From the sequence record MZ501268.1: 64,000 nucleotides of DNA; one strand, 5' to 3'. A program made the translations under genes and the position numbers. The notes beneath the pieces were generated by a model that was not told the DNA's origin, did not search any database, and worked only from the letters and a program-made list of their open reading frames with translations. Below are positions 9,249 through 59,210 of the stretch, piece after piece; within the stretch, counting starts at the first letter, position 1, and each line of letters starts with the position of its first letter.

Positions 9249-9302
9249 GGCATATAGGTCCTCCATTACGGAGGACCTTTTATGACACTTCTTTTTTTTT
9301 TT
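9249..9302. terminator. Terminator hairpin between convergent genes
   Basis: AGGTCCTCC/GGAGGACCT stem inside GGCATA...TATGAC flanks, then a T-run. Confidence 0.75.
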
Positions 9303-9681: not shown

Positions 9682-9724
9682 GTGTGTATTTCCACTAATA
9701 AAAGGGAAGTTAAGAAAAGCAACC

Positions 9725-9750
9725 TGAGGAGTTATTCCATTGACTCCTCA
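9725..9750 (-). terminator. Hairpin after the gp77/gp76-like unit
   Basis: TGAGGAGT/ACTCCTCA 8-bp stem, 10 nt downstream of the stop at 9760. Confidence 0.5.
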
Positions 9751-9759
9751 TAATGTATA

Positions 9760-10221
9760 CTACATGGATTCTATTTGCTTTTGAAGTTGCTTCAGTTGTT
9801 TGGCGTTATCTGGCATCTCTGCATCAAAATCACGCAATGCTTCGATCATTGACTTACGCCTACAATAAGTATACTTCATCCATTTATCAAATGACAAACC
9901 GTATTTTTCAAGAATACCCGCACGCAGGTACTCCATCTCATATTTTCGCAACCCAACTAATGCCAACGGATCTTCTTGTTCCGTTTGTAAGATTAACGAC
10001 AGCGGCGACGGTTCCGTATTGTGATCAATGATCCCGTACGTATCATCGTAAAGCTCTGTTAATCGAATTAGTGGGTACTCCCAGTTCCCGGTGAGAAACT
10101 TAGGATCCTCTAATGCGACGTCCCATGCATCAGACCGGTCATCTGGGCTCAGGCCGAAGTCATAATGGATTAGATGTCGGCTTGCTCGAACGTCTGATTC
10201 AACGTATTCGTCATTAGGGTA
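9760..10221 (-). CDS. -1-frame extension (gp76-like), probably fused to the upstream gene by frameshift
   Basis: Frame is open from the T8 run at 10221-10228 to the stop at 9760 (153 aa: YPNDEY...LYDDTYGIIDH...PLSLIL...IESM). No ATG/GTG/TTG occurs until TTG 9966. Confidence 0.7.
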   Translation of the reverse strand, partial: YPNDEYVESDVRASRHLIHYDFGLSPDDRSDAWDVALEDPKFLTGNWEYPLIRLTELYDDTYGIIDHNTEPSPLSLILQTEQEDPLALVGLRKYEMEYLRAGILEKYGLSFDKWMKYTYCRRKSMIEALRDFDAEMPDNAKQLKQLQKQIESM

Positions 10222-11813
10222 AAAAAAACCCGACCGACGTTCAGCGGCGTATAGGCTGGGAACATCTTACTGATCAGCGGTTGTTTTTTACCACAGTGCG
10301 GACAAGTCCAGCGAGGGACAGCGACCACACCAATGGTTACGCGGTTGATGAACTCGTTCAGCTTTTCAAAGAACGGCTTACGCATTTCTTCTTTTGCACT
10401 GAACTGCTTCAGCAGCATTGCGATATCATCGCCTGAATCAACAAAGCTGCCGTCTTCAAACTCGATGCGCGTGATCCAGTGTGCGTAACCACGCATAGAG
10501 GACAGGGCCGCTTGTTTGTTGATGTGCTGCTCACGCTGCTCACGGGTCATGCTGTCATTGAACGAGTCAGTGATCGCTTGCTGAATGCCATTGATCCAGG
10601 CGTAACCTGCCAGGTTCTTATCTTCCAGCGATGGCACACGCAGGTAGAACTTCACCGCACCCACTTCGATGACGTTGTCTTTCATCACTTCAAACGCCGC
10701 TTGATAAGCCAGCACTTGTTCGACGGTACGTCCACTGAAGTTACTCATGTGTGAACGCTGTGTTGCAGACAGGCGTGAGTTATCAATGATCATCAGGCGA
10801 GAGATGTTCACTTTAGCTGCTTCAACATGAACACAGGTCTTCGGATCAGCAGCACAGGCCGTTACCAGGTTGTAACCTGATTTGAAGCGCGCACCCAAGT
10901 AGGCGTTAGCGATCAGATCCAGATCCTGTTCTTTGATCAGCGGCAGCAGGGTTTTCTTATCAGATACCCCAAGTGAGCTGTCAGTCACCATTCCCAGCAG
11001 GAAGTCGGACATGTGTTTACGCACAACCACATCGAGGTTGTTAAACACCATGCCATTGGTACGACGACCGAGTACACCCTTCTCAGCCATGATCCCGGTC
11101 TGCATGTCGACGAATTCATCATCGCCAGCTACCAGCATGGTTAACCAGATACCAGAGTGGGGTAAAGGAATGTGGATGTAGTCACCCATGTTCATGACCG
11201 CACGTGCACGCATCACAGCCTGCGGGCCTGTCAGCAACTTAGTACCTTCGCTACTGGTCTTCACCGGTGGACGTGACACACCCTGCACTTTATCGCCGAG
11301 CAGAATACCCTGCAACCATTGCGCACCATCTTGACGAATGGTCAGGTTGATACCCGCACGGTATGACAGGTTGTTGATGGCGTTGCTTGCCAGGGAGAGC
11401 CAGAGCAGTGCACGTTCCGCACCGTACAGACTGATGATCTCTTTCAAGATCTTCTTGTCATCGGTGTTGCTGTCGATCTCATTGATCAGCGCAGCAAAGG
11501 CGTCGAACTCTTCATGCACGATAGACATGACATCACCGCCACCCATCGCTTCGATGCTTTTCAGCTTCTCGATGAATGGGTCTTTATAAAGCGCATCGAT
11601 TGGTTGCTCAACCGCGTCTTCCTCTTCTGCTGGTTGTTCTTCAGCAGGATCAGCAGGAGTCTCGGGATCAGTACCTGCCGGCGGCGTTTCTTTGACTGGT
11701 GTTGGTGCAGGAACAGCAGCGCGACCTTTGGATGGATCGACTTCAGGAATAGCGCTGTGTGCGTTATCGTCTTCAGTGGCCACATTAGCAACAGTTGGGT
11801 TCTCGTTGGACAT
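10170..11813 (-). CDS. gp77-like protein; probable tail/baseplate-hub assembly chaperone (T4 gp26-like)
   Basis: 547 aa; acidic N-terminus; Cys motifs CAADPKTC and CPHC; ends VFFTL...; synteny. Confidence 0.7.
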   Translation of the reverse strand: MSNENPTVANVATEDDNAHSAIPEVDPSKGRAAVPAPTPVKETPPAGTDPETPADPAEEQPAEEEDAVEQPIDALYKDPFIEKLKSIEAMGGGDVMSIVHEEFDAFAALINEIDSNTDDKKILKEIISLYGAERALLWLSLASNAINNLSYRAGINLTIRQDGAQWLQGILLGDKVQGVSRPPVKTSSEGTKLLTGPQAVMRARAVMNMGDYIHIPLPHSGIWLTMLVAGDDEFVDMQTGIMAEKGVLGRRTNGMVFNNLDVVVRKHMSDFLLGMVTDSSLGVSDKKTLLPLIKEQDLDLIANAYLGARFKSGYNLVTACAADPKTCVHVEAAKVNISRLMIIDNSRLSATQRSHMSNFSGRTVEQVLAYQAAFEVMKDNVIEVGAVKFYLRVPSLEDKNLAGYAWINGIQQAITDSFNDSMTREQREQHINKQAALSSMRGYAHWITRIEFEDGSFVDSGDDIAMLLKQFSAKEEMRKPFFEKLNEFINRVTIGVVAVPRWTCPHCGKKQPLISKMFPAYTPLNVGRVFFTLMTNTLNQTFEQADI

Positions 11814-11830
11814 TATGTTTTATCCTTACC

Positions 11831-12298
11831 TTACTCTTTTGTTGGATCGACCTGAACTGGGTCATTGACGGTGTTCTTGGCAGCGGTAGCAACAGCATTT
11901 GCGTGAGCACTGTCAGACATCGCGAGAATAGCGGCCCCGTGGAAAGCCATGGCATCGAGCAATTTGCTCTGCAAGATAACGTACTGCTCATTCACGCCCA
12001 GGAAGTCAGCGATGCAATCATCTTTCATTGCAAACCCGGTCTTGCCTTCGTGTTGTGCTTGAATGGCTGGGAGTTGTTTATCGAACTCTTCGACAATGGC
12101 GAGTGCTGCTTCCAGGTGTTGGTTCAGCGCCGGCACGTTTGGTTGGAAGCGAACGATGTTGGTGTTAACAGCCAGCAAACAAGTGTTTGACAGCTCGTTG
12201 CGCAAATTAATCGTATAACTTGCGACAGAATTCAGGTATTCCCAGAACTGGTCCGGTTGATGGACCTCCGGGGCCAGAGGCGGCTTGGTGTTTGACAT
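11831..12298 (-). CDS. gp78-like hypothetical protein
   Basis: ATG 12298 follows AGGA; synteny. Confidence 0.6.
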   Translation of the reverse strand: MSNTKPPLAPEVHQPDQFWEYLNSVASYTINLRNELSNTCLLAVNTNIVRFQPNVPALNQHLEAALAIVEEFDKQLPAIQAQHEGKTGFAMKDDCIADFLGVNEQYVILQSKLLDAMAFHGAAILAMSDSAHANAVATAAKNTVNDPVQVDPTKE

Positions 12299-21131: not shown

Positions 21132-21183
21132 GCATAAGGAGAGGGCATTTGCCCTCTCCTGTTTATGCCGTCTTTTTTTTTTT
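21132..21183. terminator. Terminator hairpin between convergent genes
   Basis: GCATAAGGAGAGGGC-ATTT-GCCCTCTCCT..TATGCCG followed by a long T-run. Confidence 0.8.
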
Positions 21184-58997: not shown

Positions 58998-59062
58998 GGC
59001 ATAACCCCCTGAGAGAGAAGCGCGATGCTTCTCTCTCAGGGATGCCCGAATCTTTTTTTTTT
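58998..59062 (+). terminator. Intrinsic terminator
   Basis: CCCTGAGAGAGAAGC/GCTTCTCTCTCAGGG 15-bp stem, GGCAT/ATGCC flanks and a T-run. Confidence 0.85.
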
Positions 59063-59174: not shown

Positions 59175-59210
59175 AAAAAAAGGAGGAAGCAGCTATCCAG
59201 TTACTTCCTC
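59175..59210 (-). terminator. Terminator for the helicase gene
   Basis: Minus strand GAGGAAG...CTTCCTC then C and T7. Confidence 0.65.

Follow-up and report, generated by a model that had tools for sequence, protein, structure and literature searches.

A probable programmed -1 ribosomal frameshift in the gp77-like gene of Erwinia phage AH06 and other phiKZ-like phages

The genome of Erwinia phage AH06 (MZ501268.1; genus Agricanvirus, 275 kb), a phiKZ-like jumbo phage, raises the question of how a long reading frame might be translated that opens inside the end of the preceding gene and is without a start codon for more than half of its length. The frame follows a homologue of phiKZ gene 77 on the minus strand of a 64,000-nucleotide stretch of this record, which was analysed as a whole and is termed the window here. 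A sequence-only reading had proposed that a programmed -1 frameshift at a run of T's fuses the gp77-like gene to the start-less frame. Following up this proposal by comparison with related phages, we conclude that a family-wide programmed -1 ribosomal frameshift, which would generate a short and a long isoform of the gp77-like protein, is the probable explanation. The elements of the locus, in coordinates of the window, are as follows:

10170..11813, minus strand: gp77-like core gene AH06_284, an open reading frame (ORF) of 547 amino acids, labelled “baseplate protein” in GenBank; phrog_4585, E = 7e-164
10221-10228, minus strand: run of eight T's (T8), read from the sequence
10221..10227, minus strand: slippery heptamer T_TTT_TTT, in phase (codons GTT TTT TTT), read from the sequence
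9760..10221, minus strand: -1 frame extension of 153 codons, counted from the heptamer's final T, plus TAG (9762-9760); phrog_13274, E = 3e-86
10170..10221, minus strand: overlap of the two frames, 52 nucleotides (nt), in which 16 zero-frame codons plus TAA coincide with the first 17 codons of the -1 frame
9760..9966, minus strand: AH06_283 as annotated, 68 amino acids from a TTG start, corresponding to the last 68 codons of the extension

At the candidate site the zero frame reads CGG GTT TTT TTT ACC on the minus strand, which places the T_TTT_TTT of AH06 in the zero-frame phase of an X_XXY_YYZ heptamer. Sixteen zero-frame sense codons follow, and then a TAA at 10172-10170. The -1 frame is already open 15 codons ahead of the site, and the first 85 codons of the extension contain no ATG, GTG or TTG, the first such codon being a TTG at codon 86; for this reason a list of ORFs gives only 9760..9966 (68 amino acids). 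A slip at the heptamer would yield a product of about 684 residues, a figure obtained by arithmetic only (531 + 153). Every count given in the sequence-only reading, from the heptamer to the lengths of the two products, matches the sequence. A T7 run alone is within chance for the window, where 17 matches compare with 9.7 expected, and the T8 at 10221-10228 is the only run of seven or more T's within a long ORF. Three things lift the observation above chance: the phase of the run, the overlap with an open frame of 153 codons and, most of all, conservation in 79 loci.

These loci comprise 75 IMG/VR contigs, retrieved by an alignment-based scan with the upstream protein (21-76% identity), and the isolates phiKZ, 201phi2-1, SPN3US and Goslar. 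The resulting 79 distinct loci share 20-78% protein identity with AH06 and fall into 44 clusters at 50% identity. The conservation that had been claimed for phiKZ-like phages is borne out throughout the set, including the four isolates: a T-run occupies the same two Phe codons in 79/79 loci, and in all of them the -1 frame is open from before these codons for 150-192 codons, running 123-174 codons past the zero-frame stop. In most loci the +1 frame closes within a few codons. A shift would be permitted in every locus only within a stretch of about 10 codons, which begins 2 codons ahead of the heptamer's end, extends to 8 codons past it and includes the T-run. T_TTT_TTT or T_TTT_TTC is found in 39 of the 44 clusters, and in the others N_TTT_TTY or a T5 run preserves a slippery tetramer at the least. 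The zero-frame tail past the site is conserved as protein and ends within 8-37 codons in all loci. Three loci (L066, L073 and L075) are peculiar in that their zero frame extends 37 codons past the heptamer, compared to 8-21 elsewhere, and the two frames overlap by more than 110 nt.

The boundary of the conserved extension coincides with the heptamer. In a tblastn search with the extension, 21 phage records were matched, and every match started at query residue 1, directly at the heptamer, including those in Salmonella phage SA002 (48% identity), Erwinia phage pEa_SNUABM_37 (50%) and Proteus phage 10 (44%); in these three phages the upstream gene stops 51 nt past the start of the match. Homology upstream of position 9966, the annotated start of AH06_283, is therefore present, as the proposed fusion had led one to expect. 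In Special G (81% DNA identity) the T8 and the whole 52-nt overlap are nearly unchanged between flanks that diverge (about 80% identical), the -1 frame is open, and the downstream gene is annotated from a GTG at a homologous position other than that used in AH06. A pattern scan of viral contigs with the 153-residue piece alone gave no match.

The amino acids at the site prove nothing by themselves, since the two Phe residues are invariant or nearly so in protein alignments; it is the choice of codons that reveals selection. The first Phe codon is TTT in 77/77 loci with the Phe pair, compared to a TTT share of 0.41 over the remainder of these genes. For the second, TTT occurs in 58 cases and TTC in 22, either of which keeps a perfect heptamer. 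The base before the pair is T in 68/81 loci, behind at least 11 different amino acids and against a third-position T background of 0.29, while the run is followed by A in most loci and hardly ever by T. Conservation in relatives is thus accompanied by a bias at synonymous positions, and the codon choice fits selection for slipperiness beyond the demands of the protein.

The start-less part of the extension, judged by its substitutions, behaves as a coding region of the -1 frame. From the zero-frame stop to the TTG, AH06 and Special G differ at 8, 9 and 26 sites in codon positions 1, 2 and 3, respectively, and the changed codons are synonymous in 22 and non-synonymous in 11 cases. A comparison with a 62%-identical relative gives 21, 9 and 51 differences and 34 synonymous to 21 non-synonymous changes. 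The constraint on the -1 frame is tighter in this stretch than in the annotated part, and within the overlap the substitutions track the codon positions of the zero frame. Signals for independent initiation, which the sequence-only reading had listed as something to look for in homologues, are scarce. In a common alignment of the 79 loci the first ATG, GTG or TTG of the extension is scattered over homologous positions 3-126; a Shine-Dalgarno-like motif precedes the first start-like codon in about 3 of the 79, and in 3 loci the extension lacks an ATG altogether. The locus thus combines a long overlapping -1 ORF with the lack of an initiation signal of its own.

Annotation has followed the start-like codons. 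All ten GenBank records examined (10/10) show two separate genes with unrelated start positions, as the sequence-only reading had expected for a pair of this kind. The downstream genes PHIKZ076.4 (80 amino acids), 201phi2-1 gp135, SPN3US gp40 and Goslar gp82 are parts of the -1 frame past its first start-like codon, and gp135 is annotated from a TTG that overlaps the stop of gp136. Because the annotated starts of relatives sit at quite different homologous positions, the start of AH06_283 is, on this comparison, a gene-calling artefact. Some Agricanvirus genomes (P0020, MadMel and RAY type; locus L006) present a special case, as their -1 frame is already open 48 codons ahead of the heptamer, with a start codon in that part. 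The downstream gene is consequently annotated in these genomes as a 182-residue ORF that starts inside the gp77-like gene, and phrog_13274, with a profile of 182 positions, was built on such an ORF.

In the phiKZ-like (Chimalliviridae-type) jumbo phages, a programmed -1 ribosomal frameshift would account for these features in the following manner. Most ribosomes would translate the zero frame to the TAA and release the 547-residue protein, which ends in a conserved 16-residue C-terminal helix. A minority would slip back by one base on U_UUU_UUU with tRNA-Phe in both the P and the A site. A single tRNA-Phe decodes both UUU and UUC, and therefore both tRNAs would re-pair perfectly in the -1 frame. 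The slipped ribosomes would read 153 further codons to complete a protein of about 684 residues, in which the C-terminal helix is swapped for a helical extension domain, and the purpose of the arrangement might be the supply of two isoforms at a fixed ratio. The efficiency of the shift is presumably low and the long isoform minor, given that no stimulator was detected and that U_UUU_UUU has been reported to be a weak shifter.

The same properties also weigh against a ribosomal frameshift, as do several others. In E. coli U_UUU_UUU shifts much more weakly than A_AAA_AAG (PMC5009743). A stimulatory element, which would usually be sought next to such a site, is missing at the level of hairpins as well as of upstream Shine-Dalgarno-like sequences: the 60 nt after the site are no more stable than controls (median z = -0.10 versus -0.24), RNAalifold predicts 0 pairs over 58 loci (a test that covers nested consensus structures, with pseudoknots and lineage-specific structures outside it), and upstream there is neither a Shine-Dalgarno-like stimulator nor an enrichment of anti-Shine-Dalgarno pairing. 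About nine loci have a degenerate motif (N_TTT_TTY or T5 only) and keep the extension all the same. The T7-T8 run could equally serve slippage by an RNA polymerase, the support for the shift is wholly comparative, and the function assigned to the protein (see below) relies on sequence matches that stay below threshold and on a moderately confident model.

The sequence-only reading had also pointed to a hairpin downstream of the site:

10187..10210, minus strand: weak hairpin (8 pairs and a bulge of 2 nt) that begins 10 nt past the T-run; -5.7 kcal/mol, z = 0.07 versus shuffled sequences

The hairpin exists, and at the distance described, yet its proposed role as a stimulator was rejected, as it is no better than shuffled sequence and no consensus structure emerges across the 58 loci. 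Two loci with the most degenerate motif, a mere T5 (L021 and L026), have downstream folds among the most stable (z = -3.0 and -2.6), which may represent a lineage-specific compensating stimulator.

Three other explanations have to be weighed against a ribosomal shift. The polymerase could add one U at the T-run, such that a fraction of the mRNAs would carry both frames in register and be translated normally; the enzyme concerned would be the phage non-virion RNA polymerase inside the phage nucleus. The sequence-only reading had rightly mentioned that slippage of this kind would yield the same protein, and it is a possible source of the fusion. It is in keeping with a run of T7 or T8 in 57/79 loci and with the lack of an RNA stimulator of ribosomal shifting, as well as with the under-representation of UUUUUUU in all frames of enterobacterial genes, which is possibly owing to slippage (PMC4066793). 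Yet, the run never exceeds 8 T's, and the 22/79 loci with only 5 or 6 T's retain the extension, which is why ribosomal slippage on a tetramer or heptamer fits better. Moreover, the TTC at the second Phe codon in 22 loci shortens the run and leaves the heptamer perfect, the run is not extended in the 3' direction, where the next base is mostly A and almost never T, and a phase-specific T before the Phe codons is a requirement of the heptamer. We therefore consider transcriptional slippage unlikely.

The downstream frame might instead be a separate gene, translated from a non-canonical start or by re-initiation, and its overlap with the T-run incidental. This is how all of the GenBank records examined present it; the TTG of 201phi2-1 gp135 overlapping the gp136 stop would suit such a gene, and so would the weak constraint on the first 17 codons of the extension that is implied by substitutions tracking the zero frame in the overlap. 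However, the position of the start is not conserved, Shine-Dalgarno-like motifs are almost absent and three loci have no ATG; the tblastn similarity sets in immediately past the heptamer, at the very first codon, and does so even in matches of 44-50% identity; in 79/79 loci the open -1 frame reaches back over the heptamer, which a separate gene would not need; and the codons of the heptamer are under selection. An independent gene is thus quite improbable. Even less credible is an artefact or decay, i.e., a true T9 that was misread, a frameshift mutation or phase variation of the DNA at the T-run. Homopolymers are indeed common sites of sequencing error and replication slippage, but the same frame relation recurs in 79 independent assemblies of isolates and metagenomes with runs of 5-8 T's, and the conserved zero-frame tail always stops within its narrow range of codons. 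Continuous ORFs, which the sequence-only reading had named as the mark of an assembly error, were found neither among 19 database homologues (521-570 amino acids) nor among the best 150 of 1671 representative clusters, all of which terminate no more than about 10 residues from where the profile stops. It follows that the zero-frame stop is conserved, and since no homologue is a fused ORF, a sequencing error is excluded. Taken together, the frame relation in 79/79 loci and the codon choice strongly support, on comparative evidence, a -1 shift at the T-run that fuses the gp77-like gene to the start-less frame, and a ribosomal frameshift is its probable mechanism.

Beyond the shift site, the surroundings of the locus indicate that the two frames belong together. 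The neighbouring elements are:

11831..12298, minus strand: gp78-like gene AH06_285, directly upstream of the gp77-like gene; phrog_10945 (GenBank annotations)
9712..9750, minus strand: terminator-like hairpin of 8 pairs with a U-rich tract, directly after the extension stop; -12.8 kcal/mol

Special G retains the hairpin at 9712-9750, where both partners of one pair have changed, and no comparable terminator-like element lies between the zero-frame stop and the extension in AH06. Since the only such element comes after the extension, both frames appear to form one unit, and the hairpin is probably the 3' end or terminator of a gp78-gp77-extension unit. The other long homopolymers of the window (T11 at 9292-9302, T11 at 21173-21183, T10 at 59053-59062 and T7 at 59175-59181) are all intergenic or abut a stop codon; two of them lie between convergent genes and may be bidirectional terminators.

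The label “gp77-like” proved right. With the 547-residue protein as query, tblastn matched 224 phage records; that of phiKZ is among them, matched at PHIKZ077 with E = 4e-38, and this homology is complemented by the gp78-like gene next to it, a synteny that is kept in all isolates examined (GenBank annotations). The neighbours in AH06, Special G, phiKZ, 201phi2-1 and Goslar are the gp78-like gene, small hypothetical genes and virion RNA polymerase subunits. A hidden Markov model search of 1.84 billion representative proteins assigned 1671 clusters to the family, 1128 of them with E <= 1e-30.

What the two isoforms might do is less clear than how they would arise. The AlphaFold model of the 547-residue protein (predicted local distance difference test, pLDDT, 67) shows about 106 disordered residues at the N-terminus, an alpha/beta body and a C-terminal helix at residues 526-544. 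In this model the helix contains both Phe codons of the shift site, and the long form would accordingly lose most of it. The extension is modelled as all-helical at low confidence (pLDDT 60); it has no recognisable family by Pfam or PDB sequence profiles and no match in a PDB fold search. It may add a second binding module. The AH06 547-residue protein itself matches neither Pfam nor PDB sequence profiles, and its best PDB fold match reaches only E = 0.39. Several features of the protein vary within the family. Residues 1-106 (11496-11813), predicted to be disordered and rich in P, A and E, differ widely in length and sequence among homologues, and SPN3US-type proteins have about 130 extra N-terminal residues (phrog_8054). 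A CxxC motif (CPHC, 10278-10289), which precedes the shift site by about 25 residues, resembles a zinc-binding site when taken with two more conserved Cys residues upstream of it; the CxxC pair is missing from the most distant homologues, P0018 and P0019.

Hints of a function come from weaker matches. A Foldseek search of predicted viral structures returned the protein's own family first and then entries named “Baseplate hub assembly protein, bacteriophage T4-like” or “Baseplate protein” (probability 1.00; E = 2e-6, 7e-6 and 2e-3), with target TM-scores of only 0.43-0.56, predicted structures as targets and a query of pLDDT 67. Two of 59 family members match the Pfam family PF12322 T4_baseplate (best E = 5e-5), which we take to be T4 gp26, and phrog_150 “baseplate hub” (3e-6); a one-by-one Pfam search of 30 family members recovered one of these two T4_baseplate matches. 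The curated threshold of PF12322 is reached by none: the best member, at locus L028, scores 23.5 bits versus a cut-off of 24.5, aligning residues 357-498, just before the shift site, with positions 107-212 of the 219-position profile. T4 gp26 and gp51 are listed as hub assembly chaperones in a review (PMC3004832). The gp77-like protein thus seems weakly related to the T4-type baseplate-hub assembly family, on evidence that is suggestive but below threshold, and such matches probably explain the GenBank name “baseplate protein”. As phiKZ gp77 is not among the 40 proteins of a virion structural atlas (PMC13250141), and 201phi2-1 gp135 and gp136 carry no mass-spectrometry note in a GenBank record in which their neighbours do, the protein may act outside the virion. 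That it is a tail baseplate-hub assembly factor not present in the virion is, in our estimate, an evenly balanced proposition.

A comparison with known recoding systems clarifies where this candidate stands. The lambda gpG/gpGT pair and the conserved tail-chaperone frameshift of long-tailed phages (Levin 1993; Xu 2004; as summarised in PMC5009743), with a G to GT ratio of about 30:1 in lambda (PMC5009743), resemble it in several ways. Both show a -1 shift on a slippery heptamer located toward the 3' end of a morphogenesis-type phage gene (here at the sequence level), a shared N-terminal part, a long form that is probably minor, conservation over large evolutionary distances, and products that are apparently absent from the virion, as judged here by the atlas and the mass-spectrometry notes. 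On the other hand, the first product has 547 residues and an alpha/beta body, compared to about 140 residues (within about 100-150) for a G/GT-type first product, the gp77-like gene is not placed between tube and tape-measure genes, the heptamer is U_UUU_UUY, and there is no sequence or fold match to tail-chaperone families. In the Foldseek search with the 547-residue model, BFVD entries named “tail assembly chaperone” appeared only at E > 2. The gp77-like pair is hence not a member of the G/GT family, as it differs in position, size and fold. The term “G/GT-type tail chaperone pair”, used in the sequence-only reading, holds as an analogy, backed by the weak link to a T4 hub chaperone, and fails as a statement of family membership, given the 547 residues, the neighbours and the missing Pfam match.

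The likeness to the T4-type hub family, i.e., the Foldseek matches, the two members that match PF12322 and phrog_150 and the alignment of L028, is likewise partial, as the jumbo-phage proteins are more than twice as long and the AH06 protein is without a Pfam match. We know of no frameshift in T4 gene 26. In T7, gene 10A/10B extends the capsid protein by a -1 frameshift and gives a minor isoform beside the major one. A late-gene -1 shift close to the stop that swaps a short C-terminus for a longer one is common to T7 and the gp77-like gene, whereas the T7 products are structural capsid proteins of the virion and belong to another protein family. A frameshift in the major head protein of phage A2 has also been cited (PMC10885494). 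E. coli dnaX, which encodes tau and gamma, shares the -1 shift on a homopolymer-type heptamer read by a single tRNA species (PMC7412058, PMC5009743). However, dnaX combines A_AAA_AAG with an upstream Shine-Dalgarno-like element and a downstream hairpin, and its shift truncates the protein, whereas the gp77-like gene has no detected stimulator and its shift would extend the product.

In the open full-text literature, including phiKZ frameshift papers, a recoding review and a phage frameshift-prediction paper (closed-access work lay outside this search), no published description of this frameshift was found, nor any report of the trans-frame product in the open literature. A phiKZ-like core-genome paper has no gp77 entry in its text and supplements, and the text of a transposon-sequencing (Tn-seq) paper does not name the PCH45 homologue. 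What would accordingly be new is the use of a canonical mechanism by this protein family and in this genomic setting, together with its conservation, by comparison of the loci, over a whole major phage group.

Few phages have been studied as intensively as the nucleus-forming phages of the phiKZ type, whose conserved gene set includes gp77. If the recoding is family-wide, the proteome of each phiKZ-like phage would contain an unannotated protein of about 650-700 residues, and PHIKZ076.4, 201phi2-1 gp135, SPN3US gp40, Goslar gp82 and AH06_283 would be fragments with arbitrary starts. PHROG families, as well as knock-down and transposon screens that treat such fragments as separate genes, would need to be re-read. 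The G/GT principle of an assembly-factor ratio fixed by frameshifting would reach another protein family and another genomic position, and the gp77-like site would be a natural example of a heptamer that seemingly works without a conserved stimulator in many hosts.

To our knowledge, no tail assembly chaperone pair has been described for phiKZ-like phages. A tentative proposal, possible though rather less likely than the alternative that it is wrong, is that the two isoforms are tail-hub assembly factors supplied at a fixed ratio, i.e., an independently evolved counterpart of G/GT on a T4 gp26-like protein that is driven by a bare U_UUU_UUY on host ribosomes. If so, model phages such as phiKZ would harbour a recoding event absent from their annotation, which with more than 1100 protein clusters at 50% identity would be among the most widespread in phages outside G/GT, and the same bare heptamer would work unchanged in hosts from Pseudomonas to Vibrio.

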